A DNA stretch of 64,000 nucleotides from Anthoceros angustus. Taxonomy: Eukaryota; Plantae; Anthocerotophyta. The notes below the pieces were generated by a model. The model searched no databases. It had not been told where the DNA came from and saw nothing but the letters and a program-made list of their open reading frames with translations. The stretch is from assembly GCA_010909165.1 (NCBI GenBank), contig VJWM01000205.1, positions 124,001 through 188,000 on the forward strand, given 5' to 3'. Made by a program: the position numbers and the translations under genes. Shown one piece after another: positions 2,481-61,566 of this stretch. Numbering within the stretch: the stretch's first letter is position 1; each line of letters opens with the position of its first letter.

Positions 2481-4397
2481 GAGGAGGGGAATCACCACCG
2501 ACACCCAGGCGGGCGATCGCTGGTGGTCCCACAGGACCCACTCGGAGGTCGAGAGGACGAGAGGGGATGTGGTGGTTACCGCAGTTGTCGGACCGCCGCT
2601 TGAGCTCAACCCGAGAGTCTCGGGAAGGGGAAGGGGCCCCGCCTCGCGGATCATCCGATTGGGTGCTCGCAATCGCTGTCAGGGCTAGGGATTGGGCCAC
2701 CAGGGCCGAGGCGGAACCAAGGCACTCCCAGCCCCACCGCCGACGACGTAGATAGGCGGAATAGGGGGGGAATACTAGGTGGGCACATAGAACATGCAGC
2801 TGTAATAGAGTGTAATAAAGGCGCCGCCCTTGGGCGTAGTATAAGAGGGCTGCTCTAGTAAAGCATCTTTTTCTTGGGGTGGATCTGCGTTTCCTTATAG
2901 ACCCTTGTGCGTCTTTGCTAACGTGAGTCTGAGTCAACAAGGTGCACGGCCCCAAAGAGATTGATCAAGGTCCTGGTGACGGACCCTAACGTGTGGTGGT
3001 GTGTGCAGGGGCGAATGATCAGAGACCCTTGCTCTTCCACAGCCGGGGACCGACGTTGGACGGACCGAAACGCGTGAGCCGGTGGAACTCCGGGAGAGCG
3101 TATGGAGACCGGACGGAGAGGCATGGTAGAACGACGACGGAGGTCCGGACCACGCAACTCACTCACTCTTCTCAAAAGAATGATGAGCGTAGTAAGAGTG
3201 GTGAGAAGGACGGACTAGACGAACGAGGGGCAGAGTGGTAGACTACGGACACGAACGAGTCCTTAAACGTTTGGCCACGCCGGGCCTGTTCGGTGAACAT
3301 TAAGAGTAGTTAGTAGTAAAAGCGAGACATGCGCGTTTGAGTCGAAAGCGGTCATGGCGGTGAGGTGAAAGCAGTTGAGGCGTGCCAAGCGGAACCTATC
3401 ATTCTCTTGGGAGCGGACCCTTGCTGTGACGGATTTGTATGTCGTCCGGTGGCCGTCGGTAATCGCGCCACACCTTGGACAAGATGCAGATTGCTGGCCT
3501 CAGAAATGGAATAGAGCATCATTGGAAAATGGTGGTCATCACTCCTTGTAGCTTCTGGCCATAAACAAGGAGGGAGTTGAGGGCTTGTGTGATATGGATC
3601 TTGCCCAAGTTGAGCAAGATCAGCTTAGAGCTCGAATGATTTGGAACTCTTGCCAAAAGAGATGACCGCCCGTATGGAGGCTATCTGAGCATAACTTCTC
3701 ACCATCCTCCACACACACTTCCTAGGAGAAAAGGTGAGGCCTTCCAACAAGCAATTGTTCTGACCAGCGAGACATTCATCTTGGTAGAGAGAGCAAAGGA
3801 GATGGAGATGTTTGAAAGGGAGGCATGTGCAGCAAGGAATGCACCAGAAAAGTTAGAAAGGCAAGCTGCAATCGAACGAAAGCAGATTGAAGTTGTAAAA
3901 TGGAAAGCAGAGTAAGCATTAGCAAAAGCCCAGAAAAAGGAGATGGAAATCGCAGACAAAAGGGCTAGGAGGGAGGAAGCTCTTGCACAAAAGTTGGCAT
4001 TGAGAGCTCAAGTTGCAGCTGGAAAAGAAGCTACTAGGGAGGCATACCGGGCAAGTCAAGCAGCCATAGCGGCTGCTATTTGCAAGATGGGCCCCAACTG
4101 AGAGGTTGCTTTTGTCGCCATAGCTAGAAGAAGTGTCGGGCAAACACTTTGTTTGTTGTGTAAGGTTTGTTGTCTGGCCACCACCCTTTTGTCTAGATGC
4201 ACTGTGAGCTTGTCCAGTCCTCCAGCCGTTTGTCCAGTAGTCGCCAATTGTTGTCCGCATGCCCAGCAATTGTGTCTTGTCATCATCGCTATATCCTGTC
4301 TAGAAGCAATTGTGTCCTGTCATCATCGCTATATCATGTCTAGATGCCCAACTATCCAGGAGAGCAGTTTGCAATTCTGCACTCTGGTCTCAGGATT

Positions 4398-15100: not shown

Positions 15101-15635
15101 ATCTCCCGAGCCAGCCTATCAGCGCATGCCTTCAAGACAAAAAAAAAAAAAGGCGTTCAGCTAGAACCTCGCCATCAAAACCAGACTCAAGGGAACAGAA
15201 ACAGAGAGTCAGAAATCCACCTTGATCGGCATTCCCGTGCAATGGAATCCAAAAGGCAGCAACACCCTTTCTCCCCTCAGACGATGATAAGCTGCCGCGA
15301 ACTCCAGCTGAACCGATCAGGCAGAACCAGAGTGAGCGCCTGTCAACACATGCAACCGGCAACACAAATGCGAAGCCAAAAACCCGAGTAGCACCAACCT
15401 TGCTGGCGGTGAAGGCGTGGCCCAGATGCAGCAGGCCATTCATGTAGGGGTAAGGAAAATTGCCAAAAAATTTGACCACATGATCCGGCTTCTCCGGTGC
15501 ATCCACCTCAAACACCTTGCTCTCCGTCCATCGCTTCTGCACCTTCTCCTGAATCTCCAGCAGCTTGTCACGACGCGCATGGCTCTTGATGTTCTCCAGA
15601 TTTGATGAGACTGGCGGACCCGCGGACGGCGCCAT
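12172..15635 (-). CDS. LARS: Cytosolic leucyl-tRNA synthetase, 3 exons
   Basis: HIGH-type motif [24 protein letters not shown]1 editing motifs [13 protein letters not shown] and [15 protein letters not shown], and KMSKS. Confidence 0.97.
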
Positions 15636-30500: not shown

Positions 30501-32876
30501 TTGCACACTCGTGATCGTGTGTGATTCTGTGTCATGATCCAATACCTTTTATGGTATCGAGCATGGTATCTAATCATTGCTTGTTTATAGTTGGTGAGAC
30601 ATACAGCTGGGACCTAGTTGCCCATCCCGTCGCTGAGGATGCACAACTAGGCTCCCAACTATGCCCCCAACTATGCCCACCACCTGCGCACAAGCATGAG
30701 ACTAACAATTTCATGAAGTTTTCTAATAAACCTATGTAATCTATTCTATCGTGCACGTAGCTCATGGAGAATTACTCTAGTTTGCCAAGATGGCACTTTA
30801 TTTCCTCAGAGACCAAGAAATACATAATCCCTTGGTCATAATCGTAGCAATTATGTTTTCCATTTCACGCTAGATGTCACCGATGTACCGACCTCACATC
30901 ATTGGCCATGACAAGGAACACGAATTACAATTCCCATTCAAAAAGCTATTTTAATATCCATCCGATGGACAAGTAGATGATTTTGTATAGCATAGCATAA
31001 TAGGATCAACATAAAAGTAGGTTTTACAACGGGACTGAATGTCTCGTTATAGTCCAAACCCTAGACTTCTGTATAGCCCCTTGACTGAATGTCTCGTTAT
31101 AGTCCAAACCCTAGACTTGTGTATAGCCCCTTGCTACTAAGCGTGCTTTGTAGCGGGCTATAGATCCATTAGGGTTCAATTTGAGCTTAAATATAATGTG
31201 GGGCTCCTATAGTCAGGATGAGGGAAGGTTGATCATCAAATGTGACCATGCACGACGTGGGTCTAAAAATAATCTGCAGGCTATGTTCAAAGGTAAGCTT
31301 CTTGACTGAAAGAAGGTTTTTGATCATGGTGGGGACATGTAAAACACCCTTTAAGATGATATGATGCCCATGATTAAGTTTCAGCTTAACATCTCTTGTG
31401 CCGTAAATGGCAAGAGCTCTGTCACCTAACAAGACAAACTGGCTTGTTGGTGATGTGGTGTAGGTGAGGAACATATCATGGGAGTGGCAAATATGATTAG
31501 TTGCCCCCAAATCAAGAAACCACATGTGTTTTTCTGCCTTGGTGAGTGAGAGGCAGACAGCTAAAATGGCTGTGCTTTATTGTTGTTATTATTAGGCCTA
31601 ATCACATTTGTTTACTGCGGGCGCCTCGGCTCCTTGCAAGCTTTTTCCAGCACTCATTCTCATAGTGGCACGGAATGCACACCGCCTCCTTTAACCCTGC
31701 ATGGTGTAGATGTGTTGCCTTGTCCATTGTATGGCCATCTAGGGCCTGTAGTGGGCCGTTATCCGCCATGGCCCGACTAGATTCTTCTTCAAGCAAGGCG
31801 CCAACAATTTCAGATAAGGTAATGGAAGGGTTACCCCGGGAAACAGCTGCATTTACTACTTGTCTAATTATTGAAGCTTAGGAACTGACGAAGGTCCGAT
31901 AGCTTGTAGGTAGAGAGGTCAGTAATGCTGTCACTGCCTCCAATTCTGTTATTGTGGCCCCTACTGATGATAACTTTGCACGTAGTGTGCGAAATTGATG
32001 CATGTGATGCTCGATTGAGTCGGACTCCTTCATCCGAAGTGAATAGACGATACATGTGGCATTCACAAGTGACATAGCGCCCCACGTGCAAACATATCCT
32101 TAAAGACTTTCCAAACTACAGCAGAGGTAAGTCGTCCTTGTGTTGAAGGGTAACCTACACTAGTCAACTAAAGGATAAACTAGGGTTATCTATAATGGGT
32201 TAGTTAATCAATGGTACTTAAACAATTTTGTTTATTACTCGATTCATTATTACATTTGGTAGTTTGTACGCTGGCTCTCCTCTCACGGCTCGCCCTCTTC
32301 TCCCAATTTTACATGGTATCGAGCCCCGATGCTCATCTCGATCTCAAGTATGCCTCGGCATGGTGATTTTGTCGGTCAGGGGCGCGGTTCGCTTCTCTAT
32401 AGATGCGAAAATTCACAACGCGCTTCTAGGACAGTACCAGCCGAATAGAACGCCCTGGCATATTCACTTGTGGGGAGGACAGCATATCGCAATCAAAACT
32501 GGTCTCCAGACAGGGAGCGCGCCGAATTGCTTCGGGAACTCCACCGGCGCAATTCTCAGCTTCGATATTTCAAAGCTCGTAACAATTGCTTCAGGGATCA
32601 AAGGAAGGACAAGAGGAACAGGCAAGAAAAGACATCCAGTTCTACCAACTACTCCTGTAGGCTGCCCAGACCACGACGATCTGTGGACTCCATATAATTC
32701 CCTAATAAGTTAGTTATGATCTTCCCTTCTCCATACAAGGGTCCTCTGCAAAACCAGAGAGCAACAACATCACCACCACACACTCACAGAAACCCACAAG
32801 TTTGCTAACCTGCAGGTGGATGAAGCTTACCAACAATGATTTAATCACACTGCAGCAGCATCGTCAACACCACCTT
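27332..32876. repeat. ~2.79-kb tandem duplication (27332-30117 / 30118-~32876)
   Basis: The copies are near-identical; the second has many 1-3-nt indels. Confidence 0.92.
27830..29377 (-). mobile_element. Inverted, internally deleted Ty1/Copia remnant (gag, protease, part of RT; no integrase seen). Gag continues at 34621-34890; duplicated at ~30600-32140
   Basis: Gag SLRMKESDSIEHHMHQF..LTSLPTSY, protease WFLDLGATNHIC, RT RYKARLVARGYTQ and HQMDIKIAFLNG. Gag N-terminus MEAILEEHDLMDKIDG lies at about 34760-34830. Confidence 0.88.
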
Positions 32877-34895: not shown

Positions 34896-37800
34896 TGTGG
34901 AGTGGAAAATAAGGCGAAAAGGGAGAAATAAGGCCGGAGTAACTCCGGACTGCACTCGAGTAGGCAGAGAGACTCCGGACCGCACTCCGGAGTAGCTACG
35001 GACGGCCCTCCGGAGCGGATACAGACCGCACTCTGGAGTACACCACGGTAAGTCCGGACTACACTCCGGAGTAAGTCATGATAAGTACGCCAAGGAAAGT
35101 AACTTGGGAGCGGGAAGCGTAGGAGGGGCCACGTGGACGGTGCTGAGTGGTGGACAGGCATGCAGTGGACCGGGGCCGTAGGGTTGCCAGTGGCCATTAT
35201 AGGCACGTATTCACGCTCCGAGTACAGGGCGCCAGCGTAAGGCTAGAGTACGCGGTTGGCGGTACCAGCGTAAGGCTAGAGTACGCGGTTGGCGATACTA
35301 GCGTAAGGCTAAATGCAGTTGGCGGTACAGCGTAAAACTAAATCTGCAGTTGGCGATACCAGTAAGGCTAGAGTATGCGGTAGCGTAAAACTAAATGCAG
35401 CAGTTGGCGATACCAACAGAAGGCTAAATCTGCAGTTGGCGGTACCACAGTAAGGCTAAATCTGTGATACCGGCGTAAAGAGCTAAATGCAGTTGGCAGT
35501 ACAGTAAGGCTAGAGTATGCGGTAGCGTAAAACTAAATCTGTGATTGGCGATACCAACAGAAGGCTAGAGTAAGCCATGCGAGCCTCGCGATTCTGACGG
35601 CGAAGGGCGCCCTCCCGCTTTGGTTACTCGCCGGCCGAGCGAAGGTCATTCTTCCAAGCGACCTCGCGACGGTTTTCGCAATCTCTCGCGCTCAGACACC
35701 CGGCTCTCTGGCGTTGTCTCTTCAAGCGCTCAAGCACCCTTACGAGCAGCTCATCCTCGTGGTTAGAGCGACCGACGCAGCGACAGAAGGACAGAGGATT
35801 GTTGAGCCTCAACCCCCAACAGCGGAACAAGAGGAGTGCAGCAATGGGGCCCAAGAAGGCGGCGGAAGTGTGGGAGCCCTGGCGCCTGGTGGAACGGAAC
35901 ATCGTCACCAAGCGCTACCTGATTTCGGACCTTGGTTGGCGGAGGCGGAGGAGCTGGTGGAAGACTGCACTGGATATTTTCAGGTATCGGACCAGCGTCG
36001 CCCTAGTCCGGGAATATGCCCGGAAGATGTTGGCAGCGGCCAACAAGGAGGTCCGCTCCAAGAACCTCAGGGAAGACCCCAGGAGGTGGACCGTGGAGGT
36101 CCTGAGGCGGTCTACAACCGTCCAGCGGAGGAAGTAGGAGGAGTGGTTCCGGAGCCCCTGAAGGTGAAAGGGAAGGTGGACGCGGCCAGGGCGGCCCTCT
36201 TGAGACCGGGAACGCAGCGATCCTCCAACGGATGGCTGATGTCGGACCTTCTAGACAGGAGGGTGCGAGCAATGGTGAAGATCATTGTCCACTGGAACAT
36301 GCTCACCAAGGTGGACCACCTTGGTGACAACTTGCTCGTGTTCCTCCACGCCCTGCAGAGAGGGAAACGGGCCGACTGGGGAAGAATTATCTTCGCCAAG
36401 ATCAACCAGGAGGCCAGGAAGTTGAGGAGTGAGAAGCCACCCCCGTCGGCGTTGTCGCCGTTTATTATCCATGTGTGGGGGCACATGAACCTCCTGAAGG
36501 AGGGAGAAGAAGAGCGGGCGCTGCGGAAGGGATCGCGGCCCCGCCTCAAGGCAGCGTGAAGGAAGAACGCGGGAGGCGAAGGCCGCCAGGCCAAGCGGCC
36601 AAGAGGAGGCGATTGGGAGGGGATTCCGGACTCCATACGTCTGGAACGGACCCCCTCGCCATCTAGGGAAGTGTGGAAAGACATTTCCGCTTCCCTTCTC
36701 TTAGTCCCTTCACCGGAGCACCCTGCGCAAGAGGAGGCGGCCACAGAAGGAGGCCGTGAGGAGAGCAGAGAGGATGCCACAGCCCCACAACGGCCCCAGC
36801 TGTTGAACCCCGCCGGACTAGGCGGGAAGCGAAGAGGCGAAAGACGACCCCCACCAACGCAGCGCCAGATCAAGACTGCCCCGCCAATGGAGTGGCAGGA
36901 AGCTGAGGAGGCCGTGAGGAGAGCAGAGAGGGATGCTGCTCAGGGAGCGGGAGGACACTGGCAGCAACCCCACCCCGAGCCCGTCCTGTCCCCAACCGGG
37001 AGAGGCAAGAGGGCCAGCTCTCGGACCCCCTCACCACCTCCGAGCCCCAAGCGAAGACGGGCGGAGAAAGAGCTAGCGGCCAAAAGGGCCAAGGAGGTGG
37101 AAGGTCCGGCCCGAAACATTGGGTCCGGAGACATTGGTCCGGCCTCCCTCCGGACTGCAGTATGGCGGTCCCTAACGGACCGAGAGATGCCGTACGACCG
37201 GACTTCTTGGGTGCCTCCCAGTGGCCGTAGAGCCTGCAACTGGCCATGGACGGTATGCCTGGGTCTCATGAACTGAGAAGACCCAAGAAGTGGAGGCCAC
37301 CGCACGAATGGTGGAGCTGTGACAAGTGAGGCGGCCCAAGCGGCCAAGAGGAAGGCGAACACCCTCGCAAGAGTCGAAGAGGAGAAGAGCAGGCGGAGTC
37401 GGTGAGGTCCGCCTAACAAGACCGGGCGTGATTCTCCAAATGTGAACAAGCAAGCCAGAGGCCGGGCAAGGAGGAGGACCTTTGCAACGGAGGAAGCCTG
37501 TGAGCTGGAGGAAGCCCAAGGCAAAGGGTTAGGACCCGCCGAGATGGCTGGCAGAGCAACACCAAGCCTCGGAGGCTCAGGTGAAGACGGCGCGAGGCCG
37601 AGGCCGCGGCGAAGACAGATAGGGACCACTACCGGCGAGACCGAAACCGTGGAGGAGGCGGGAGGCGAACACCTCAAGGCCCTAGAGGTCCCGAGGCGGA
37701 GGAGGCGAGGCATGGGCAAGCCGTGAAGAAGAAAGGAGGCCAGGACCCGGGAGATAGAGGATCTCCGGGCAAGCCGGTGGAGGAGACGGTAGCGGGCTAA

Positions 37801-40124
37801 CTCAAGGCCGAGCAGTGGCGGGAGGTGCATGGGCAAGCCGTGAAGAAGAAAGGGAGGCCAGCACCCGGGAGATAGAGGATCTCCGGGCAAAGTTGCAGGG
37901 AGCGGAGGAGCGGCGCCAGGAGCTGGAGGATCGCAAGGATACCCTGGAGTTGCAGCTCCAAGACATGGTGGAGCGACATGGAATTCTCAAAGGGAGAATC
38001 ATGGACCACGAGCAGGAGATCGAGTGCCTCCAGCTCTGTTGGAGGGGGGAGGAGAGTCGACGGCGAACTAAGGAGATGGACATCGCCGAGTTGGAGAAGG
38101 AGCTGGAGGAAGCCAGAAGCCGGACAGAGATGCCGGACCGCTTGGGAAGGGAGATGGTGGCCCTCTGGGCAAGGATGGATGGAGGGGAGAGGCTCGAGAG
38201 AGGAGCGTGTCGCCGGTCCGACGCAAGGGCGAGGGAACGAGCTCATGGTCGCTGTCGGTCGAGCCACACGACGAGAGGAGGAGCACGCAGAGCAGCAGCA
38301 GAGGCTGCAGGAAGTGTCGGAGGCAGCCTTGGCGGCCTCAAGAGAGTCCGCCCGACTCCAGTTGGCGGGCCTAGCGACGGAGAGCCAGCCCGGCCAGCAC
38401 GCCCAACTACCGGAGCACCTCTGGAGGAGGGAGTACCGGGTGCTCCGGGCTCATGTGGAGGAGGCAATTCAACAAGTCGATTCAGACTTTGCCTACTACC
38501 ACGCGGAGCTCCTCAAGGCCCTAGAGGTCCTGAGTCACCCCCGTCAAATTGACGGACCTCCGGACGGGTCAGAGGGAGGAGGAGAGATGAAGGCCCCGGA
38601 GATAGTGCGGCCACCGGGACCTTGGGAGCGCTGTTCGGCGACGACAGCAGCAGCGGGGAAGGGGATCACCTGGAGGAGCAGGACATGGCGGACCCCACTG
38701 GGCCTGAGGTAAGTCCTCCGCACCCCACTACGGAAGGAAGGGAGGAGGGCCCCGAGGGGGCCATAGAGGGGGAAGTCCCGGAGGACTTGAGACAGCGTGG
38801 GGGTCCGGTGCGGGAGGACGGACCCTCGGGAAGTCCACGGGGCGGAGAAGTCCAAGGACCCGCGAGTCCGGACTCCGGAAATGAGACCAGACCACGAGGT
38901 GGGACTCCAGATAAGGCTGCACCCAAGGTCCAACCCCGTAGTCGAGACCGGTCCCGAGGTCCTGACTCCAGAGCCGGACCGAGGTCCTGACTAATAAGGC
39001 TGCACCCTAAGGTCCGAACCCCAGAGTCGAGACCGGTCCCCGAGGTCCGGACTCCAGAAGTAAAGCCGGACCCTGAGGTCCGGACTCCAGAGTCGAGGCC
39101 GGACCCCGAGGTCCGGACTCAGGAGGAGAGGGGGAATCATCACCGACCTGCTCAGGCAGAGCAACCTCTTGGGACACCCGCAGAGCAGGGACCCACCAGC
39201 AAGGCAAGAGAGGAAGGCGAGGAGGACTTGGTGGTGACCGCCGTTGTCAAGCCTCCGCCGGTGGCTCAACTTGACAGAGTCTCGGGAAGGGGAAGGGGCC
39301 GCAACTTTCAGGGCTAGGGATTGGACCAGCAGCGCCGAGGCGGAATCACGAGCACTCCCAGCCCCACCGCCGACGACGTAGATAGGCGGAATGGAGGGAA
39401 ATAGTAGGCGGCAGGCTAGGGCACACTGAGCTGGCCACCAGCTCAGAATAGAGGTGCAATAAAGACGCCACCTTAGGCGTAGTATAAGAGGGCAGAGGCC
39501 GCTCTGGTGAAGCATCTTTTTCTTGGGGTGGATACCGCGTTTCCTTGTAGACCCTTGTGCGTCTTTGCTAATGTGAGTCCTGAGTTACTGAGCAGGCACG
39601 ACAGCCCCGGAGAGATTGATCAAGGTCCTGGTGACGGACCCTAACTTGTGGTGGTGTGTGCAGGGGCGAACGATCAGAGACCCTTGCTCTTCCGGAGCCG
39701 GGGGCCGACGTTGGACGGACCGGAACGCGTGAGCCGGTGGAACTCCGGGAGGGCGTGTAGAACCCGGACGGAGGGGCCTGGCGGAACGACGACGGAGGTC
39801 CGGACCACGCAACCCACCTACTCTTCCCAAAATAACGATGAGCATAGTGAGAGTGGTGAGGAGAACGGACTACGAGGCGGTAGACTACGGGCTGAGCAGA
39901 ACAGTCTCAAACGCTTAGCCACGGGCCCTGTCGGTGAACGTTAAGAATAGTTAGTCGTAAACTGAGACCGCGCGCATTTTGAGTCCGAAACGGTCATGAT
40001 GGTGAGGTGAGAAACGGTTGGGACGTGCCAAACGGAACCTATCATTCTCTTGGGAACGGACCCCTTGCTACAACGACACGGGACTGTGCGCGCCCGGCTG
40101 GCCGTTAGCGAAAGTCATGCCACA
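34896..40124 (+). mobile_element. 5.2-kb LTR-like unit (TGTGG...CCACA) with a long frameshifted non-pol ORF
   Basis: Terminal inverted pentamer. A second family member ends at 3470. ORF pieces from 35844 to about 39240 include LHALQRGKRADWGRIIF..SPFIIHVW, a coiled coil and 11-aa repeats. No PBS, PPT or TSD seen. Confidence 0.7.
35215..35572 (+). repeat. Degenerate ~30-33-nt tandem repeats (AGCGTAAGGCTAGAGTACGCGGTTGGCGGTACC)
   Basis: Visible directly, near the left end of the 5.2-kb unit. Confidence 0.85.
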
Positions 40125-41512: not shown

Positions 41513-42900
41513 TGTAGCGATAAAATCTGTTTTGACAAAGGTGTCCGCTAATTTGGGTGCCCAAACGCTAGTCTAAAGTAGGGTGAAATAAGGACGTGTC
41601 GCACGAGGTAAGCACTTGAATTCATGTAAGCACTTCCCCGACCAACAACCAAGCGAACAAATCGAATACGCAGATATATAGGTGCAACCAATAACAACAG
41701 AGGGAGTAGCTCGCACATCGTGGCACAAACACACCTCCCACGAGAACAACACGCAAATTCTCACACATCGCCTCGAGTCATAGCTTGGCCTCCTCACAAC
41801 GCCTTGCATTGCGCCTATCTAAGGACAAGCTATGATCCGAGCTGTCTCAATGGAAGGGTCTATATACTAGACCCAGCATCGCATATTCCTAAGATATCCT
41901 ATTGGCATCAAAGATATGCCGTAAATATCCTAAGAATACACTATAATATGCAAGGAATATGCCAAAGCATATTACTTGAGCTTATCCACTTAGCTATTGT
42001 ATCCTAAGAATACACTATAATATGCAAGGAATATGCCAAAGCATATTGAGCTTATCCACTTAGCTATTGTATCCTAAGAATACACTATAATATGCAAGGA
42101 ATATGCCAAAGCATATTACTTGAGCTTATCCACTTAGCTAACCATGTTTAATTAACACTAATCAATGCTTAATTAACATAAGCACATTAGATTAATTAAC
42201 ACTAATCAACGCTAATTAACATAAGCACTTTAGATTAATTAACACTAATTACTTACTTAAAGATAAGTAATTAGATTAATTAATGCTAATCAAACACTAA
42301 ACCCAAGTGCAGATTAGTATCATCACACGGCGCTATAGTGTGAGACTACTACACTCCCAACAAATGAGTAGCATCCTCTTCCAGACCCAAAGACTGCCTA
42401 TGTTGCTCATGTAACGGACGTGAGAGTCCCTCTGTTAGCAGGTCTGCCACGTTTTTGGCTGTAGGAACATAGGTTAAATGGATTATCTTTTGCTCGATGG
42501 CTTGACGGATATAATGAAATTGGATCTCGATGTGTTTTGAGCGCGCATGCAGTATAGGGTTTGCAGAGAGTGCTATCGCCAACTAGTTATCACACTGCAC
42601 AATAGTTGGTGAGGTTTGGTACTCATGTATTTGGAAAAAGAAGTGATGAAGCCATGTCATCTCTTTAGCTGCTAGGGACAGGGCACTATATTCAGCCTCT
42701 ATGGAGGAGAGGCTGATGGTGGACAACTTCTTGCTCTGCTAGCTAATTGCAGAACCGCAAAGAAGGGTGCAGTAAGCTGCTAAAGATTTTCGGCCATGAA
42801 CATCTCCAGCCCAATCCGCATCAGAGTAACGTGCAAGAGTAAAATCTGTTCTTTTTTAATACTTCAAGTATAGGTGTTTGGTGCATTTAAGATAGCGCAC
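41513..42900 (-). mobile_element. Inverted Copia 3' end: RNase H plus an 841-bp LTR (41513-42353, TGTAG...CTACA)
   Basis: YSDADWAGD, AEYSALS, AIALSANPILHARSKHIEIQFHYIRQ, NVADLLTEGL. Purine-rich GGGAG directly precedes the LTR. About 70-74-bp repeat x3 at 41927-42140 inside the LTR. Confidence 0.88.
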
Positions 42901-44695: not shown

Positions 44696-44957
44696 CGGAT
44701 GGCCTACAACCCTCTCTCTCTAGTTTTGAAGAGGTAGTAAAGTGATGGTTTTCCTAGTAGTGGCACTCCATCCCGAACTTTTTGGAAGTTTGCCATAAGA
44801 TGCAGGTTTTACAAAGATGTTGGACCAAACCCGCCTCATTACAGTAAAAAAAGGACATAGAAGTCATTTTCCTCTTGTGGAATTGACCCTTAGAACCTCC
44901 AACAATACGTAGAAGAGAGCATAATGTAATCGAGCTAGCCACCTTCAAGCGTGCACA

Positions 44958-45347
44958 GTTAAATAGTTAGACTTGAAAGATGGAATACCGAACACCTTAA
45001 TCTTGCAACGGAAGTTAAATAGTTAGACTTGAAAGATGGAATACCGAACACCTTAATCTTGCAACGGAAGTTAAATAGTTAGACTTGAAAGATGGAATAC
45101 GAACACCTTAATCTTGCAACGGAAGTTAAATAGTTAGACTTGAAAGATGGAATACCGAACACCTTAATCTTGCAACGGAAGTTAAATAGTTAGACTTGAA
45201 AGATGGAATACGAACACCTTAATCTTGCAACGGAAGTTAAATAGTTAGACTTGAAAGATGGAATACCGAACACCTTAATCTTGCAACGGAAGTTAAATAG
45301 TTAGACTTGAAAGATGGAATACCGAACACCTTAATCTTGCAACGGAA
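44958..45347 (+). repeat. Minisatellite, 7 x 55-56 bp (GTTAAATAGTTAGACTTGAAAGATGGAATACCGAACACCTTAATCTTGCAACGGAA)
   Basis: Seven nearly perfect head-to-tail copies; copies 3 and 5 lack one C. Confidence 0.97.
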
Positions 45348-46360
45348 TGCAACCATCGTAGGCCAAATGCAAGGAGCAGTCGATAGCTATCACTAACTTC
45401 TACGGAAATCAATGTCCGTGACACATTCTTAGAACAATATCGGATATAAAAGATAAGAAATAATACGGCCACATAAAACAAGAATGAAACAAGAACGTCA
45501 GAAGGTCACACATACCAAAAAACAAAAGTATGTAACACGACCACATGGAATAAGACGAAATAAGAGTAACGCAATCACCAATTTGTACTAAAGAAAAACT
45601 TAGCAACCGCAATAGAAGCCAATACGTAATAAAAAAACCTTACCACAAAAAATATATCTCCATCAAATTCCTCAATAGATCTACCATAAATATAAACAAC
45701 AGGAATTTAAAGAATTTCTTATAAATTTTAAAAAATTTATAACAAAACCCTGCAGACGATCAATCCCCTCTGAACATGTTGAGCCAAGGATTCACATTGA
45801 GCCTCCTAGTTGAGAACACACCCGCTGAGTCAAAACACGCTAAGGATTCGCGATGAGCCTCCTAATTGAGAGCTCTAATTTTCCTTGTGTAAAAGACCTC
45901 GGTACGTACATAGTTTGTACCTAAGATTATCCATGAGTACAATAAGTACTAGCTTCTTCTAATATTAATTCAATTAAATTCAATAAAAGTGGTCTCACGA
46001 ACACAAGTCAGATTAAAGTGCCGACTTGTCTTTTATTAGGTACTCAGTCATAGGTAGAAGCTAAACCGATTGGGGGACATGGGAACTTTTGTTGCATGGC
46101 CTCTCCCGACTATTGGCAATATATATAAAAATGACATTGAGGTGAACAGCGCGCAACGATCAAACTTCAATGCAGAAACCGGATCGCGCAGCTCACATCG
46201 GTTACGGAACTTCGTCACTGTCCTCGCAGGTTTATGGAGGGAAATTGTACAACGTGATGGAATTACGCCCGGGAGCCGTCACCGAACGGAAACTGCAGCA
46301 TCGGAGCTTTTATTGCGCGGGAACGGCAGGTTGCATGCTGTGGCAATTGCCAGAGCAACC

Positions 46361-48283
46361 ATGGCGGATGGCGGCTGGGGCGACATGAGCGTCGGGGGAT
46401 GGGGCTCGGCCCCGGTTGCCGAGGCAGGAGACACGGAGAACGCCCGGGGCGTCCCGGGGGAGGAGGCCGAGGACGGCGGCGGAGGATGGGGCGTCCCGGT
46501 GGAGGAGGCGAAGGACGGCGGTGGAGGCTGGGGCGTGCCGGTGGAAGAGTCCAAGGACGGAGGCGGAGGCTGGGGCGTCCCGGTAGAGTCCAAGGACGAA
46601 GACGGAGGCTGGGGCGCAACAATTGGAGCAGAGGATGGAGGGGGAGGAGGCAGCTGGGGGAAGCGTAAGGGGAAGCACGGCTCCGACGGGCCTGATTGGG
46701 GCGGGAAGGATGCTAAGCGGCCTAGAGGCGAGAAAGAGAAGGGAGGGGAATCGGAGCTGCCAGACTTCCTGGAACTGGGATGCCCGGACGAGGTGGTGTA
46801 TAAGAAAATTGACATCCCGCCCGGCTCGACCGGGAAGATCATCGGCAAGCAGGGGGCAACCATCAAGGCCTTGCAGGACTGCATTCCCGGCTACGTGCAA
46901 ATCAAGCTGGACAAGGAGAGCAACCAGGTGACGCTTGCCTCCGACAACGTGGCCTGCGTGGAGAAGGCGGAGATGCTGATCGAGACCCTGCTGGCCCGGT
47001 CCGACGCCAGGAATTGGCGCCCGGATGTGTCCGTGTGCTGCCTCCAGGCTTCTCAGGGCGAGACCCGCCTGGTGCTGCACCGCCTCCCCAAGGACGCCAT
47101 CTCCCGCTGCCTGCGGGAGTTCGTGAGCCTGACCAGGGACGTGTATGTGTTTCAGTCTGCCGAGCCTGAGGAGGCGGCGGCGGCGGAGGAGGAGGAGGCG
47201 CAGCCCGGAGGAGGTGAGGATAACGGCGGGGCCAATGGCGGACCTGTGGCGCGTAGATCCCACAGCAGCCTGGTGTGCGTGGATTGGGTCGGGGGCAAGG
47301 CGGCGGCCCTGCTGCCGGGGTTCGCTGAGGTGATCCAGGCCGCCGCGTCCAGCTACAGGAAGGGCACGCATGTGAAGGTGCAGGCGCAGATCGTGAAGAG
47401 CTTCTTCCGGCCCAGGCTCGGGCCGGGTTCTGTGGGCCAGCTGGAGGCCTCCATCTCCGCCAGCGCGGAGGAGATGCAGGAGAAGCTGGCCACTGGGAAC
47501 TGGACGCTGCAGAGCTCGAATCCTTACGACGAGGAGAGCATTGCGCTATCCCGGGCCGCGTTGGAGGAATTAGGGTTTGGGAAGCTTCCGGTTTCCGATA
47601 CGGTGACGCTCCATTTGGAGCACAACGAGAGCCGGAACAAGTACGCGGTGTCTGTCAAGCTGCTGCGAGATGGGGAGGGAGATGAGGATGCTGCGGCTGC
47701 GGAGGAGAACGGGAAGCAGAAGCAGCAGATAAAGTTTAAGAAGTCATATAAACGGCACGCCTTCTTCTCGTTCCTGAGAGGGTGCCCGGACGGGGAGTTT
47801 AGGTTGCTGGTGAAGAAGAGGCCGGCGGGAGATATTATGTCTGAGCCCTTTGACTGTGTGGAAACGGCGGAGATAGAGGACATCGTGAGAGGAGCTATTG
47901 GTGAGCGTACGTCTGACGGCCTGCTCAAGACCGCAGAGGCAGGAGGGGAGTACTCCCACGCCGTGACGGTGGTGCGGCACAAGGGTGTTGAGGTTTTCTG
48001 TAACAAGGAGCATAAGGTGGTGATCAAGAGGGTGAGGATGCAGGCTGCTGGCAAGAGCGAGGTTATCAGCAGGTGGGAGGTGACTGTGGAGAGCCTGCCC
48101 CTGAAAGAGCATCTCCTTTCAGGCTCTGTGCAACCAGAGGAGGTGTCGTCCTTTTTGGGTGGCCTCGTTGCGTTCACCACTCGGCTTACGCAGACTATGG
48201 GCGCTGTTGGCTGTCTCAAGGATCTTGACAACATCGCAACCGAGTGCCCCTCGGTGGATCAGTCGGAGATGACTCCATCGTGA
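46361..48283 (+). CDS. Intronless 640-aa protein: WG/GW-repeat N-terminus, basic NLS-like patch, type-I KH domain and an uncharacterised C-terminal domain
   Basis: Long GC-rich ORF with a good start context (GCAACCATGG). Eight WG motifs. KH signature IDIPPGSTGKIIGKQGATIKALQ at about 46802-46993. Confidence 0.88.
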   Translation: MADGGWGDMSVGGWGSAPVAEAGDTENARGVPGEEAEDGGGGWGVPVEEAKDGGGGWGVPVEESKDGGGGWGVPVESKDEDGGWGATIGAEDGGGGGSWGKRKGKHGSDGPDWGGKDAKRPRGEKEKGGESELPDFLELGCPDEVVYKKIDIPPGSTGKIIGKQGATIKALQDCIPGYVQIKLDKESNQVTLASDNVACVEKAEMLIETLLARSDARNWRPDVSVCCLQASQGETRLVLHRLPKDAISRCLREFVSLTRDVYVFQSAEPEEAAAAEEEEAQPGGGEDNGGANGGPVARRSHSSLVCVDWVGGKAAALLPGFAEVIQAAASSYRKGTHVKVQAQIVKSFFRPRLGPGSVGQLEASISASAEEMQEKLATGNWTLQSSNPYDEESIALSRAALEELGFGKLPVSDTVTLHLEHNESRNKYAVSVKLLRDGEGDEDAAAAEENGKQKQQIKFKKSYKRHAFFSFLRGCPDGEFRLLVKKRPAGDIMSEPFDCVETAEIEDIVRGAIGERTSDGLLKTAEAGGEYSHAVTVVRHKGVEVFCNKEHKVVIKRVRMQAAGKSEVISRWEVTVESLPLKEHLLSGSVQPEEVSSFLGGLVAFTTRLTQTMGAVGCLKDLDNIATECPSVDQSEMTPS

Positions 48284-49101: not shown

Positions 49102-51870
49102 TTACGTGGGCCTCTGCGGATGCTTCTCATCGCCAACCAGAAAACTATGCACCAGTCCATCGTCGTCTGTCCACCAGCTCTGACCCGGCTGCTTCAATGC
49201 CAGGATTCTTTTTCTCTTATCCTGCATCAACCGGGCCTGCTCCCACATCTGGGCACCAGTGTATATCGCGGACATCAACACATATGCTACAGCATCTCTC
49301 TTGTCCAGCTTCAGTGCTTGGTCAAAAGCATGGCGTCCCACCTCCACATTGCACCACTTTCGACAAGCACTCAATAGAGTGTGCCAAATTGCAGCATTAG
49401 GAGATGCAAGCATCGCCCGTAATAGAGCTAGGGCCTCATCCAGTTGTCCTGCACGACCCAGGAGATCCACCATGCATGAGTAGTGGTCCTCGGTCGGAGT
49501 GATGCCGTGGTGCTTGCTCATTGCCTCGAAGTACTCCCAACCTTTGTTCACCAGACCCGCATGACTGCACACTGTTAGAACACTAACGAATGTGATGCCA
49601 ACAGGCTGTATTCCATCCTCTCTCATTCTCTCAACCAAGGAGAAGACCACTTCACTGTCTCCTTGGCAGCTGTACCCTGCGATCAGTGCATTCCAGGCAC
49701 CAATCTCTCTTTCGAACAGCGAATCAAACGCCCGCTGTGCATCCACCATGCTCCCACATTTCCCGTACATGTTAATCAAACTGCCGGCCACAAACTTGTC
49801 AGCTTCGAGGCCTCGCTCTTTAATCTGTGCGTGCAGCTGCCTTCCCAAATGCAAAGCTGCCACATTTGCACAAGCCTGCAGAAGGCACACAAATGTCACG
49901 GAATTGGGTACAGCGATCCCTTCCTTTTGCATGACACTGTAGAGACGCAGCGCTTCCTGCCCCATGCCCTGCTGAGAATACCCTGCTATCATGGCGCTCC
50001 ATGTCACCACATCTTTCTGACCAAGTCCGTCAAACACTCTCTGAGCATCTTCCAAGCTGCCACACTTTGCATACATGTTCATCAAACTGCTGCCTACGAG
50101 GACATCAAATTCGAGTCCTTGCTGTCTAATTTGCTCATGAAGCTGCTTCCCCATCCCCAAAGCTTGGGTGCCCACACTGGCACATGCCTGCAAGAGGCAC
50201 ACAAGTGTCACGGAATCAGGTACAGCGATGCCTTCTTCTTGCATAACACTGAAGAGATGAAGGGCTTCCTGGCCCATGCCCTGCTGGGAATAACCTGCGA
50301 TCAAGGCATTCCATGTCACCACATCTTTTTTAACAAGTCCGTCAAACGCACTCTGAGCATCTTCCAAGCTGCCACATTTCGCATACATGTTCACCAAACT
50401 GCTGCCTACAAACCTATCAGCTTGGTATCCTTGTTCCCTGATTTGCGCATGAAGCTGCTTCCCCATCTCCAAAGCTGCGGAGCCCACACGTGCACATGCC
50501 TGCAGAAGGCACACAAATGTCACGGAATCGGGTACAGTGATGCCTTCTTCTTGCATAGCACTGTAGAGACGAAGAGCTTTTTGCCCCATCCCCTGCTGAG
50601 CATACCCTGCTATCATGGCAGTCCATGTAACCAAACTCGTCTTACCAAGTCCGTCAAAAACTCTTTGAGCATCTTCCAAGCTGCCACACTTTGCATACAT
50701 GGTCACCAAGCTGCTGGCCACAGATACATCACCATGATGTCCTCGTTCTCTAATTTGTGCATGAAGCTGCTTCCCCGTCTCCAAGGCTTGGGTGCCCACG
50801 CTTGCACATGCCTGCAAGAGGCACAGAAATGTCACAGAATCAGGTACAGCCATGCCGTCTTTGAGCATAAAACTGTAGAGACGCAGGGCTTCATGGCCCA
50901 TGCCTGCCTGGGAATACCCTGCTATCAGGGCATTCCACGTGACCAGATCCTTTCGAACCAGTCCATCAAACACTCTCTGAGCATCTCCCAAGCTGCCACA
51001 CTTTGCATACATGTTCACCAAACTGCTGCCTACGAACAAATCAGCCTGATGTCCTTGTTCTCTGATTTGCGCATGAAGCTCCTTCCCTTCTGCCAAAGCT
51101 GGGGCGCCCACACTTGCACATGCCTGCAGCAGGCACACAAAGGTTACGGAATCAGGTACAGCAATGCCTTCTTCCTGCATAGCATTGTACAACCGAAGGG
51201 CTTCCTGCCCCATACCCTGCTTGGAGTATCCTGCAATAAGAGCATTCCACGTCACCGCATCCTTCTGACTCATTCCCTCAAACACTGTCTGAGCATCCTC
51301 CAAGCTGCCACACTTTGCGTACATGTTCACCAAACAATTACAGACAAACAAATCAGGCTGAATGCCACCGGCCAGCATTTCAGCATGCACCTGCTGCCCA
51401 GTTTTCAAGTCTGCCCCCCTCGCACAAGCCTGAATGGCAGCCACAAACACGTGGCTGTCCGGCTTCACACCTGACCTGCGCATCCGATGATACAGTTCTA
51501 TGGCCTGAATTTCCCGTCCTTGCTTCACATGCGCGCATATCATGGCAGACCAGGTGAAGGCATCTGGCTCCGCAACCGCTGAGAACACATCCATCGCGTC
51601 TTGCAACCTGCCATGAGAGGCGTACATCCGCAGGATGTGGAAGCCCAGGAACGTGTCTGACTGGTACCCCGTCTTCACCGAGAATGCATGCACCCGACTA
51701 CCCAAAACAAGATCCTTCCTCACAACACACTTCTTCAAGACAGCATAAATCAAAGACTTGGAAACACAACACTCTGTCTGCACCAGAACTCCCAAAGCCT
51801 CCACAGCCATGGCGAGATGGTCATCATAACACAGCCTGCTCACGGTTTCAGCCGTCACGCCCATCCCCAT
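49102..51870 (-). CDS. PLS-class PPR protein (~23 PPR motifs, E1, E2, WW-type PG box), ending before the DYW deaminase core
   Basis: P-L-S triplets (TWNALIAGY / TFVCLLQAC / LVNMYAKCGS), P2-L2-S2, E1-E2, then KQPGQSWWTD..VHSFLVGDEKHPQ and stop. First in-frame ATG is at 51870; the true start is uncertain. Confidence 0.93.
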   Translation of the reverse strand: MGMGVTAETVSRLCYDDHLAMAVEALGVLVQTECCVSKSLIYAVLKKCVVRKDLVLGSRVHAFSVKTGYQSDTFLGFHILRMYASHGRLQDAMDVFSAVAEPDAFTWSAMICAHVKQGREIQAIELYHRMRRSGVKPDSHVFVAAIQACARGADLKTGQQVHAEMLAGGIQPDLFVCNCLVNMYAKCGSLEDAQTVFEGMSQKDAVTWNALIAGYSKQGMGQEALRLYNAMQEEGIAVPDSVTFVCLLQACASVGAPALAEGKELHAQIREQGHQADLFVGSSLVNMYAKCGSLGDAQRVFDGLVRKDLVTWNALIAGYSQAGMGHEALRLYSFMLKDGMAVPDSVTFLCLLQACASVGTQALETGKQLHAQIRERGHHGDVSVASSLVTMYAKCGSLEDAQRVFDGLGKTSLVTWTAMIAGYAQQGMGQKALRLYSAMQEEGITVPDSVTFVCLLQACARVGSAALEMGKQLHAQIREQGYQADRFVGSSLVNMYAKCGSLEDAQSAFDGLVKKDVVTWNALIAGYSQQGMGQEALHLFSVMQEEGIAVPDSVTLVCLLQACASVGTQALGMGKQLHEQIRQQGLEFDVLVGSSLMNMYAKCGSLEDAQRVFDGLGQKDVVTWSAMIAGYSQQGMGQEALRLYSVMQKEGIAVPNSVTFVCLLQACANVAALHLGRQLHAQIKERGLEADKFVAGSLINMYGKCGSMVDAQRAFDSLFEREIGAWNALIAGYSCQGDSEVVFSLVERMREDGIQPVGITFVSVLTVCSHAGLVNKGWEYFEAMSKHHGITPTEDHYSCMVDLLGRAGQLDEALALLRAMLASPNAAIWHTLLSACRKWCNVEVGRHAFDQALKLDKRDAVAYVLMSAIYTGAQMWEQARLMQDKRKRILALKQPGQSWWTDDDGLVHSFLVGDEKHPQRPT

Positions 51871-52409
51871 ACCCTCAGCAGCAACGTCCAGATCCACCGT
51901 TCTTGCTTCCTTGAAGGCAGCCACCGGAAGGCAACATCAACGTGAGAAGCTGAAAACGGGGTGACAGGTGTTAAGATCGGCACAAAGTAGCTTAGCTTGA
52001 CGGAGGTTTGATTATCTGGTAATACCATCAGTTCCTCCCATTTCCAAAAATGCTTTTGACAAGTTTCCCGGGTGACCGTCTGTGTCATAGTCCGGGCGCT
52101 CTCGTTCACCGGCTGCAGCCATAAGGACACCGTCGTTAGCCAAACGTTAGTCGAAACTCTCCTTACGGTCACTCCAGCCCACCATGATGTCAATCAACAC
52201 AAGCTTTCCTCACGCTACAAAAGGATGAATCCATGGCACATCCCAAGAAAGCAGACACATCTGCAGCAGCCGCTTGCGACTTTCATTCACACCTCACACA
52301 CACAGCTGATAGAGCTGAGCATTGTGTGAACTCGGAGGGACTGTAGAGCTCTGCATTGAATTCTTGAAATTGAATTGCATCTTGAGATTGTTGAAAGAGC
52401 AGGGCAGCC

Positions 52410-59185: not shown

Positions 59186-61566
59186 ATGGCAACAATGGAC
59201 GTGACATTGGCTGTGGAGATCGGAGTGGCACTTGTGGTGCTGGCTGTGGCATGGCCCATGTGGAGGTCTTGGGAGCGAAGGGGGAAATGGGCGCCCAAGG
59301 GGTCGAAGCAGCTGCCGGGGACCATGGGCTTCCCGCTACTGGGCGAGACGATGGAGGTGCTGGGCCACTTCAAGACCGGGAATGTGGAGGAATTCGGGAT
59401 GAAGCGCTTCCGCAAGTATGGCAATGTGTTCAAGTCGCACGTGTTCGGGACTCCCTACGTGTTCTTCAGGGGCGCCGAGGCAGCCAAGCTGCTGAGCACA
59501 AGTGAGGACAAGCTGGTGCAGGCGCACCAGTTCCTCCCCCCCAGGAAACTGCTGGGAGAGGAAGCGCTGCTCAATGTGCACGGCGCCAAGCACAAGCGTT
59601 ACCGCAAAATGTTCAACGAAACCTTCATGGGCGAGAGCATGAGGAAGTATCTGCCGGTGGTGGAAGAACTCGCTCTGGAGACGCTCGGGACCTGGAAAGT
59701 GGGTGATATTCCCGTCGTCCGGGACGAGGCCACCAGGGTGCGTGCAAGACATGTCTGTTGGTCGGAATTGTCTTTCCGTTTGTCACAATTTGTTAGCGAG
59801 TTCAGCTGGCTGCGAATCGCAATGCTAGCCTGACAGCTTGTGATTCTAAGGGGCAGAATTTTGCTCATGGTGCGCAGTTCACGTATCATGTGATCGTGGG
59901 AGTGGTGCTGAGCTGGGGCCCTGGTCCGGTGCGCGAGAGGAGCTTGGAGCTCACTCGAATCCTGGGAACTAACTTGTTCAGGGTGCCCATCAACCTTCCT
60001 GGATTCGCCTATCACAAGGCCATGCAGGTGTGAATTCGAATGCCAGTTTGGAGCACTGAAGGCCTGTACATTTTCTCTTGCAATGGTTTGCAGTAAATGT
60101 AGCGGTGGATTGGCAATTGATGAATTGGGCCCGCGTGCAGGCAAGAAAGGAGCTGGCTAAGATGTTCGACACCGAGTTCGCGCTGAGAAGGAGTGGGAAA
60201 ATTGTTCGCAATGACCTGCTGACCGACATGATGAACGCAGTCGACCCGGATTCCTCCAGCAACACGCCTGCCTTGGGCGACGGGGAGCTGAGAGACAACT
60301 TGTTCACTATGATCATTGCTGGCCATGAGACATCCACCAACACACTCACCTGGCTTGCCAAGCTGCTCCATGAGAATCCCAGCGTCAAAGAGAAGCTGCT
60401 TGTGAGTGCATCCTAATCCGTGATGTACATCATTAATTTTGCTGTTATGCAACAGCCGTTGGAAGATGGCCTCTGAGAGCACATTGGCACGTTACTCCTG
60501 CTGGAGAATGGATCCAGTTTGAACAGGAATCCCTATCAACGTCTCCCTCTGAGCTGTCTGTCGTTTGTTTGGATGTACGTAGGCTGAGAATTTGGCAATC
60601 AGAAGGAGCAAGCAGGTTGGAGAGTCTCTGACATGGGCGGACCTCGGACAGCCAATGACCTACACCATGAAAGTGAGGCACATTTTTTTGACATTCCCCA
60701 ACCTATTAAGCATGCTGCTTACTGGAAGGCCCGTGCAAAGAACTAAAACCATTGGATGTCGCATTTGTGCAGGTTATCAATGAGGCCCTGAGGGTGTCTT
60801 CTCTCACATTTTGGTGGCATCGACAAGTCAAGGAGGACTTCACCTTCAACGGTATGGTGCCAACCAACCAAAATTTTCTTTGCTCCTAAAAGGGAGTCGT
60901 GGTACCTATCACTTTCCACTGTCAACATGCATAGATCGGTTGAAATTGCTTCAAATGCCAGATGTCATGAATCCCTCAGTGCTTCCACCATATCACGTGA
61001 CATGTGCGTCACTTGTTGCATCTACTGCAGGATACCACATTCCTAAAGGGTGGAATCTTGTGCACGACACTCACAACTTGCACCATAGTCCAGAAATCTT
61101 TGAGGACCCAGAGAAGTTCAATCCCTCTCGCTTCGATGTGAGCCACCTCAATGACATGCATTCCGACGTATATTTTGACATGTCAACATACACAACAACA
61201 GTTCATTTCGAGTGTTCGATTTGAACTGTTTGAGTTTCGTGGTGCTAACAGGTGCTCCCAAAGCCTTTCACGCTGCTGCCATTTGGAAGTGGACAAAGGA
61301 TGTGCCTTGGCAAGGACCTGGCTCTGATGGAGATCAAAGTGATGTTGCATCACATGATGCTCAAGTTCAGGTGCGCTCAATTGCAAGAAACTACCCTGTC
61401 AATCTGACTCCTATATGCATGAATGTCTGGCTGACCGAAAGGATGATGTCCTGTTTCTGAAAGCAGGTGGACAGTCGCGGAGCCAGACAGTGGGCGAGAC
61501 TTCTCAGGACTGCCCTGCCCCGAGAACGGAGTTCCCATCAGAATTGAGGCTATTCAGGAATACTAG
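59186..61566 (+). CDS. Cytochrome P450, CYP85-clan-like, 8 exons, intact
   Basis: Membrane anchor, LPGTMGFPLLGET, AGHETS (I helix), EALR, FNPSRF and PFGSGQRMCLG (heme ligand). All introns are GT-AG and restore the frame. Confidence 0.95.

Follow-up and report, generated by a model that had tools for sequence, protein, structure and literature searches.

The open reading frame at positions 46361..48283 (+ strand) raises the question of whether a KH-domain protein of Anthoceros angustus could recruit Argonaute (AGO) through a head of reiterated WG motifs. Within the window, by which we mean the whole stretch of 64,000 nucleotides analysed, the ORF list and translation give a complete coding sequence including the stop codon, which specifies 640 amino acids; its start is the first ATG within an open frame of 737 codons and has the context aaccATGGcg. 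The exact 640-aa protein is absent from public gene calls. When 1.84 billion representatives were searched exhaustively with HMMER, two relatives emerged whose similarity extends beyond the KH domain, P0001 from run SRR33208241 and P0033 from run SRR17272665. P0001 shares the architecture of the window protein and is about 40% identical to it (43% in alignment A2; BLASTP E 1e-56, phmmer E 8.5e-69), with conservation distributed in a pattern of blocks and linkers. P0033 is ~22% identical, shares the KH domain and both C-terminal halves, and is collinear throughout. When further members of this family were sought by word-indexed searches with the window protein, a two-sequence profile and P0033, only P0001 or the query was returned; two metagenome scans yielded no further relative, and local profiles of two non-KH blocks found none of the 47 other KH matches (0/47).

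These relatives bear directly on whether the gene is functional at all. The coding sequence is regarded as intronless because it is collinear with P0001 (aa 77-622, in one frame) and its own frame is unbroken, which upholds the initial annotation on this point over the whole of the coding sequence. Intronless structure, together with absence from public gene calls and the adjoining satellite and transposable element (TE)-rich stretch, would suit a silent retrocopy, a recently dead gene or a TE-associated sequence. A 56-nt satellite was located by repeat search upstream of the gene (44901-45403), and positions 31187-31525 carry a fragment of a retrotransposon Pol; both support a neighbouring stretch rich in TEs, as first described, with 20 kb as the putative extent of the pile. 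A non-functioning gene is nevertheless very improbable, as all 640 codons are open in good start context, all conserved blocks of the protein are intact by comparison with P0001 and P0033, and the coding sequence of P0001 is likewise uninterrupted. Furthermore, no terminal or inverted repeats flanking the gene were found in the repeat search of the window, and GC3 (0.78, with an overall GC of 63%) falls within the range of neighbouring genes, such as a P450 exon at 0.76. No synteny could be seen between the 64-kb window and the P0001 contig. Judged from these sequence comparisons, the WG-KH gene is real, intact and lineage-restricted.

The N-terminal part of the protein (aa 1-115; 46361..46705, + strand) is a G/E/D-rich WG platform, delimited by motif positions, shuffles, charge-hydropathy analysis and the Karlowski score. 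Its eight tryptophans, at aa 6, 14, 43, 57, 71, 84, 99 and 113, are all followed by glycine (8/8) and in six cases form GWG, exactly the counts with which the initial annotation had described the head of the protein; only four tryptophans occur in the other 527 aa. Six GWG motifs were reached in 0/20000 composition-preserving shuffles of aa 1-125, a segment from which Tyr and Phe are both absent, and a scan of the 64-kb window in six frames gives the tract as the sole stop-free cluster of at least four WG/GW motifs within 120 aa. A disorder check had been proposed for aa 1-115, and the segment is predicted to be disordered, with a charge-hydropathy value under the Uversky boundary; the net charge over aa 1-98 is -17. 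At the nucleotide level, the tract is 72% GC with a strong G skew and contains a 42-nt tandem array (46446..46616, + strand) of GVPVEE.KDGGGGW-type units carrying W43, W57, W71 and W84, which was identified by Tandem Repeats Finder (TRF; 4.1 copies, 87% matches), as repeat families D4 and D5 and by codon comparison. The presence of four WG motifs in this array agrees with the first description. Its units differ from one another in synonymous substitutions and in a small number of non-synonymous ones, with GGW-G invariant in the codon-level comparison, and the term "recently expanded" therefore holds only in a relative sense.

Immediately after this platform, and overlapping its end, lies the basic patch KRKGK...KRPR (aa 101-122, which include W113; 46661..46726, + strand), which had been noted previously and is borne out by the translation. 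Its layout is like that of a bipartite nuclear localisation signal, and P0001 has KRR, an 11-residue spacer and KRPR at the aligned position; we infer that the patch is such a signal. A conserved motif, LPDFLELGCPD (aa 133-143; 46757..46789, + strand), precedes the KH domain, with its L, P, D, E, L, C, P and D columns invariant with respect to P0001. The KH domain itself, predicted earlier on the basis of its intact loop, is of type I (aa 149-208; 46805..46984, + strand) and is recovered by Pfam KH_1 (E 6.9e-7), whose cutoff of 21.5 bits is exceeded by the score of 29.4. Its loop reads GKQG in the window protein, GRGG in P0001 and GKRG in P0033, and sequence matches of this region in the PDB were to the KH domains of Nova-1 and KSRP.

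Beyond the KH domain, a variable low-complexity linker rich in acidic residues, Ala and Gly (aa 268-294; 47162..47242, + strand), coincides with GAG-type repeats detected by TRF at 47167-47220 and has a much longer counterpart in P0001 (alignment A2). It is followed by two conserved blocks of a family-specific domain, both of which are kept in P0001 and P0033. The first (aa 310-436; 47288..47668, + strand) contains the motifs YR.GT.VKVQAQ and R..L...G..KLP....V..H....E and has no match in Pfam, NCBIfam or the PDB. The second (aa 455-615; 47723..48205, + strand) contains RHAFFSFLR, V.HK..E...N.E.KV.IK.V and W.V...S..LKE with a long helix after them, and provides the best stretch of the whole-library match to P0033 (E 1.6e-4). 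No Pfam match was obtained for aa 210-640 (430 residues) even at E<=10, PDB searches by sequence or profile returned KH and J-domain matches only, and AlphaFold2 gave no usable fold (mean pLDDT of 38.7 with a two-sequence alignment and 34.0 with three sequences). An ESM Atlas feature search with the non-KH part gave sub-threshold similarities of 0.76-0.82 to KH clusters and DUF7905, which are unconfirmed leads, and the same type of search with the mid block of P0033 gave no match.

Two possible identities for the C-terminal domain were considered and rejected. Internal duplication or cryptic KH repeats received hhalign probabilities of <1%, and no mutual similarity was detectable between the two halves. 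Because the KH domain precedes an alpha/beta domain in two parts, each with a single invariant His, the ASCC1-like combination of KH and 2H phosphoesterase was also compared; no 2H-family match was found in Pfam or NCBIfam at permissive E values, and the invariant His residues occur in the contexts H-L/F-x and H-K-x, lacking the T/S at +2 of the 2H motif H-x-T/S-x.

The two blocks are separated in the window protein by a short acidic linker of 18 residues (aa 437-454; 47669..47722, + strand), which lies at the J-domain site of P0033 and P0001 (alignments A3 and A2). At this site a canonical J domain with its HPD motif is inserted into the family-specific domain of P0033 (Pfam DnaJ E 3.7e-19), P0001 has a degenerate J domain in which HPD is replaced (Pfam DnaJ E 0.02), and the window protein gives no DnaJ match. 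The alignment between P0033 and P0001 covers the J region. The C-terminal part is without matches in Pfam and the PDB, consistent with the large unknown domain of the initial annotation, which had missed the wider KH family with its J-domain member.

The distribution of the WG tract across these three proteins is different. In P0001, aa 1-240 contain 15 tryptophans, 13 of them as GWG, and five more GW/WG motifs are found upstream in a frame that is open to the contig end, giving at least 20 tryptophans in total. Tryptophan frequency is 6.4% in the window protein and 6.3% in P0001, with spacings of 13-15 aa and 12-18 aa, respectively. Two motifs near the junction can be aligned: KDEDGGWG pairs with KDDDGGWG, and the tryptophan that stands right before KRPR is matched likewise. 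Other properties of the tract vary: the repeat units of P0001 are 36, 48, 81 and 129 nt long compared with 42 nt in the window protein, its net charge is about -2, so that negative charge is not conserved, and its upstream part has an RGG-like character, GRGG/RGGG being interspersed with GW. The expectation that WG motifs persist while spacers vary therefore holds in P0001, the only close homologue available. The WG tract is absent from P0033.

It could be argued that such a tract is no more than a neutral slippage product of G-rich coding DNA (GGN GGN TGG GGN) that a disordered head would tolerate, with function residing solely in the KH and C-terminal domains. Half of the tryptophans do lie inside one 42-nt array, P0001 has tandem arrays as well, the base composition and G skew are those given above, and the remote homologue P0033 manages without the tract. 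Four W motifs are, however, located outside the array, all with G at +1, different units were expanded in the two lineages with W-G kept in both, and the two proximal motifs hold their position at an overall identity of ~40%. Such a cluster arises in no frame of any further GC-rich stretch in the window, and neutral slippage appears quite unlikely. Since P0001 carries the WG tract and P0033 does not, the comparison indicates that the tract is an add-on under selection that belongs to a single branch of a KH family not described before.

Conservation of the W motifs implies that some function is selected, and Argonaute binding is the leading reading of the tract, which we regard as a candidate hook. 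The same conservation, which points nowhere specifically to AGO, would also be compatible with a functional GWG array that has another partner, acting either as an aromatic sticker tract, comparable to RGG/YG/FG tracts, for condensation or RNA binding by a KH ribonucleoprotein, or as a ligand of other Trp-pocket proteins; the CCR4-NOT subunit CNOT9/NOT1 and PAN3 bind W motifs of GW182. This reading is possible though doubtful. RGG-like sequence, as present in the upstream section of the P0001 tract, is typical of RNA-binding, condensate-forming tracts, and several high-scoring Arabidopsis WG/GW proteins are not silencing factors. Sticker tracts usually rely on Tyr, Phe and Arg, whereas two of these three are missing from aa 1-125, and the strict Gly flanks, the 12-18-aa spacing, the tryptophan frequency of 6.3-6.4% and the spacers of small or charged residues that lack bulky hydrophobics match verified AGO hooks.

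Published criteria bear on the same choice. Reference plant AGO-hook domains have a tryptophan frequency of 6.3% (PMC2910046 Table 1), and the window tract contains less Ser/Asn and more Val/Glu than these. With the Karlowski 2010 thresholds (dos >= 6.99 half-bits, ics <= 2.14; PMC2910046) and dos re-implemented here from Table 1 of that paper, values of 61 half-bits for the window protein (aa 2-129) and 238 for P0001 were obtained, and unrelated Gly/Ser-rich KH proteins reached up to 56, so that the composition score is weakly specific. The WG/GW scoring proposed at the outset hence gives a value far over the threshold, but one that KH controls approach; the Karlowski list of Arabidopsis WG/GW proteins itself includes glycine-rich structural proteins (PMC2910046). 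More recent criteria for AGO1 pocket partners, namely Trp within an intrinsically disordered region (IDR) together with negative charge, are matched by the disordered, acidic window tract (bioRxiv 10.1101/2025.10.18.683247). The same work reports that Trp in IDRs drives condensation too, that aromatic IDR residues can mimic GW-AGO association in this way, and that Trp-dependent co-immunoprecipitation alone is no proof of pocket binding (bioRxiv 10.1101/2025.10.18.683247).

Taken as a candidate Argonaute hook, the tract would, tentatively, make the protein an RNA-binding and probably nuclear adaptor. The basic patch would serve as a bipartite nuclear import signal, and the KH domain, perhaps with the C-terminal domain, would hold single-stranded RNA. 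The disordered GWG array would act as a set of multivalent short linear motifs whose indole rings enter the Trp pockets of the PIWI domain in one or several AGOs, and the protein would in this manner bridge AGO-small-RNA complexes to KH-bound transcripts, as NRPE1/SPT5L, SDE3, SGS3 and GW182 do by way of unrelated scaffolds. On this reading the family originally had, within its C-terminal domain, a J domain as a module that recruits Hsp70; the branch leading to the window protein and P0001 lost it, by decay in P0001 and by deletion in the window protein, and carries the WG platform in its place. A broader version, in which one branch of a hitherto unrecognised Viridiplantae family of KH adaptors exchanged its J domain for an AGO hook and provides an RNA-tethered, GW182-like scaffold in non-seed plants and algae, is unlikely but would follow the same outline; if true, it would supply the "plant GW182" that has long been missing and would bring chaperone-dependent and GW-dependent RISC biology together in a single protein family.

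No description of the combined WG, KH and C-terminal architecture was found in literature and database searches, in line with the earlier remark that it matches no described silencing factor. Plant GW/WG hooks sit on unrelated scaffolds (Pol V, SPT5L, SDE3, SGS3 and NERD), and we know of no plant counterpart to animal GW182, in the sense of an RNA-binding protein dedicated to the role of GW adaptor. The KH protein described here, whose GWG array is conserved and was re-expanded independently, offers a concrete candidate hook and is, in our assessment, a credible candidate of the AGO-hook type. Whatever the outcome for AGO, the family represents a clear module exchange, with the J domain lost and the WG tract present, and the C-terminal 430 residues constitute a new domain, for which only three members are detectable in a pool of about 15 billion predicted proteins.

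Among known systems, NRPE1 (the largest subunit of Pol V) and SPT5L/KTF1 resemble the candidate in having reiterated WG/GW motifs within a disordered, Gly-rich tract of small and charged residues, in tandem-repeat turnover through which only W-G and overall composition persist, in a W content of ~6.3% and in nuclear location, which is probable for the candidate. They differ in being an RNA polymerase subunit and a KOW elongation factor as opposed to a KH protein with a novel domain, and in possessing 17 to >40 tryptophans compared with eight in the window tract, which is short and N-terminal and has less Ser/Asn but more Glu/Val; an AGO4-clade hook is here putative. In the AGO1-associated proteins SDE3 and SGS3, too, a module that binds or handles RNA is accompanied by a small number of GW/WG motifs within an acidic IDR. 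The window protein shows no sequence relationship to them and lacks helicase, XS and zinc-finger domains, and P0001 does not retain the acidic character. RNA-binding J-domain (Hsp40) co-chaperones, represented by P0033, have the KH domain and both family-specific halves in common with the window protein, with the J domain missing from the latter and the WG tract from the former. No homology exists to GW182/TNRC6, the animal miRISC scaffold, as the window protein lacks UBA, PAM2, RRM and silencing domains in Pfam and no GW182-like proteins were among the matches of the exhaustive search; the likeness lies in a multivalent GW array, able in principle to engage several AGO pockets, joined to an RNA-binding-type domain and in the concept of an adaptor from AGO to effector.

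The window gene (46361-48283, + strand) was recovered by ORF listing and translation as one ORF of 640 codons, which begins at the first ATG, in a favourable context (aaccATGGcg), of a 737-codon stop-free stretch. GC3 of the gene is high (0.78), yet inside the local range (e.g. 0.76 in a P450 exon), and the exact protein is absent from public gene calls. Eight tryptophans lie within the first 113 residues (positions 6, 14, 43, 57, 71, 84, 99, and 113), each followed by a glycine and six of them as GWG, with just four tryptophans in the remaining 527 residues; six GWG were reached in 0 of 20,000 shuffles of residues 1-125. Within this WG tract, a 42-nt unit is repeated 4.1 times at 46446-46616 (87% matches in Tandem Repeats Finder, confirmed by repeat search), and its copies vary through several synonymous and a few amino acid changes around an invariant GGW-G core. 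Net charge is -17 over aa 1-98, and charge-hydropathy analysis classes aa 1-130 as disordered and aa 131-640 as folded. The tract is followed by a basic patch (KRKGK...KRPR, aa 101-122) and a KH_1 domain with a GKQG loop (aa 149-208; Pfam E 6.9e-7, 29.4 bits versus a cutoff of 21.5), whereas the 431 residues after the KH domain gave no Pfam match, even at E ≤ 10. The ORF, motif, repeat, Pfam, and charge-hydropathy results therefore bear out the initial annotation, which had described a WG tract with 42-nt units, a basic patch, an intact KH loop, and a long C-terminal part. A six-frame scan of the 64-kb window revealed no second stop-free cluster of at least four WG/GW within 120 residues, and other GC-rich, purine-skewed stretches of the window likewise lacked a WG/GW cluster.

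Facing the gene in convergent orientation is an intronless, 940-codon PPR gene of the PLS class with an E motif (49102-51924, - strand), the ORF of which ends soon after the E motif and gave no DYW-domain match. A PPR gene of this class marks the window as land-plant DNA. Five tandem 312-nt copies inside it (49860-51407, 73-84% identical) suggest that PPR triplets were recently duplicated within the gene. The AT-rich region upstream of the window gene carries a 56-nt satellite of about 8-9 copies (44901-45403), with more short tandem families at 41926-42290, and a degraded repeat-rich stretch further upstream contains a retrotransposon Pol fragment (Pol_BBD, E 5e-20; 31187-31525, - strand). 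No direct or inverted repeats flanking the window gene were found. At 12172-15135 (- strand), an uninterrupted 987-codon ORF, unusually long for a single exon, encodes the greater part of a cytosolic-type leucyl-tRNA synthetase with its RagD-binding domain. A subtilase (Peptidase_S8 and fn3_6, split over two or more ORFs; 19269-21553, - strand) and a cytochrome P450 (first exon, 59186-59833, + strand) are ordinary spliced plant genes on either side of the repeat-rich window centre. Positions 1-4000 and 35700-40000 are GC-rich (about 62%) and purine-skewed, with Glu/Arg-rich, coiled-coil-like ORFs that have no clear Pfam match; the two stretches are similar in composition and may be copies of a single repeated element.

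Among 5.8 billion proteins, a word-indexed search recovered a single relative of the window protein. Residues 140-640 were searched exhaustively with phmmer in 1.84 billion cluster representatives, and 48 of the 50 hits match the KH domain only. The close relative, P0001 (phmmer E 8.5e-69), has a called length of 1013 aa, is encoded on a 10.4-kb Logan contig, and is collinear with the window protein between the end of the WG tract and the C terminus; the two proteins are 36% identical by BLASTP and 43% identical in A2, their two-sequence alignment. The architecture is the same: 15 tryptophans within the first 240 residues (13 as GWG), KRR-11-KRPR at the position of the basic patch, a shared pre-KH motif, the KH domain, and then both blocks of the unknown domain. 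Because the frame (L001:1-3234) is open to the first contig base and holds five additional GW/WG there, in an RGG-like context, the true tract has at least 20 tryptophans, with the called protein N-terminally truncated and its GTG start a gene-caller artefact. GC content of the contig is high (71% in the CDS), the neighbouring ORFs are of low complexity, and synteny with the window was looked for but not found.

The tract of P0001 is built from repeats of 36, 48, 81, and 129 nt, not the 42-nt unit of the window gene. Tandem duplication renews the head in the two proteins, with glycine-flanked tryptophans kept at a frequency of about 6.3-6.4% and a spacing of 12-18 residues, and the two motifs closest to the folded part align position by position (KDEDGGWG/KDDDGGWG and the tryptophan just before KRPR). 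These features are kept while the folded part is only ~40% identical, a pattern which indicates that the tryptophans themselves are selected. The persistence of WG motifs amid changing sequence that the initial annotation had proposed to look for was thus seen, with changed repeat units, in one homologue. The evidence supports the window gene being a real gene under purifying selection.

A remote relative, P0033 (L002:38-1738; 566 aa), is encoded on a 1886-nt cDNA-like Logan contig that starts with an adapter remnant, and is a singleton among the 5.8 billion proteins. It is a weak phmmer match (E 1.6e-4), in which three collinear segments could be aligned pairwise, namely the KH domain, a G-Y/F-x-K-L-P...H...E-T/S-K block, and a V-x-H-K...N-x-E...W-x-V...S-x-x-L block; the window protein and P0001 each align to it over its full length. 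Its KH domain is N-terminal, it has no WG tract, and a canonical J domain (Pfam DnaJ E 3.7e-19, HPD present) lies between the two blocks of the otherwise unannotated domain. P0001 has a homologous but degenerate copy in the same place (Pfam DnaJ just E 0.02, HPD replaced), which is spanned by its alignment with P0033 (E 1e-8), and the window protein has only an 18-residue acidic linker at this site. Profile, word-indexed, and metagenome searches and a check of the other KH hits found no further member. These data support membership in a very sparsely sampled, undescribed family with a KH domain and then a two-block domain, and a branch, comprising the window protein and P0001, in which the J domain is dead or deleted and a WG-rich disordered head with an NLS-like basic patch is present.

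AlphaFold2 gave pLDDT values of 38.7 with two sequences and 34.0 with three. Profile searches against PDB sequences matched KH and J domains only, and ESM Atlas feature matches for the window protein were below the reliability range and not reproduced with P0033. Tests of the unknown domain for duplication within it, for hidden KH repeats, and for a 2H phosphoesterase identity were negative.

Reiterated glycine-flanked tryptophans in an intrinsically disordered region (IDR) without bulky hydrophobics are the signature of Argonaute (AGO)-binding platforms. Domain boundaries and dos scores were computed with a re-implementation of the Karlowski et al. 2010 method from its printed matrix (PMC2910046); the published method uses two scores, dos and ics, and the scores here are dos alone. 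The window tract (aa 2-129) scored 61 half-bits and that of P0001 (aa 8-254) 238 against a threshold of 6.99, in a score that rises with length; published values are 74.5 for SDE3 and 170 for NRPE1 (PMC2910046). Unrelated KH proteins of the phmmer list reach 56 half-bits on this score. The tryptophan frequency equals the 0.063 of reference hooks, and the Arabidopsis list of the same paper includes glycine-rich structural proteins (PMC2910046). Compared with reference hooks, the window tract is Ser/Asn-poor and Val/Glu-rich. It has the two features used in silico to pick out AGO1 pocket partners, a negative charge and a conserved tryptophan within an IDR (bioRxiv 10.1101/2025.10.18.683247), although its acidity is not common to P0001. 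A Trp-rich IDR can also serve as a condensation sticker, an activity stated explicitly for such regions in that preprint, or bind other W-pocket proteins. From the platform signature, dos scores, tryptophan frequency, and preprint criteria, the best reading, put forward tentatively, is that the window protein could be a nuclear KH-type adaptor, which would bind RNA and dock AGO proteins through its GWG array. In GW182-AGO structures, tryptophans bound in two AGO pockets must be separated by a spacer of ~10 residues.

Literature searches revealed no KH protein with an AGO hook, no KH, J, and GW architecture, and no description of the KH and J architecture of P0033; the C-terminal domain and P0033 are new in their own right. 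The window protein is a well-defined candidate that is cheap to test, with predicted functional steps and with comparative support that is unusually good given the rarity of the family. Plant AGO hooks, those of NRPE1/SPT5L and SDE3/SGS3, are closest by function and animal GW182 is closest by concept, but none is homologous to the window protein, which, as a candidate by sequence in a class defined by tryptophan-dependent AGO binding, would represent a new scaffold for a platform of the AGO-hook type.
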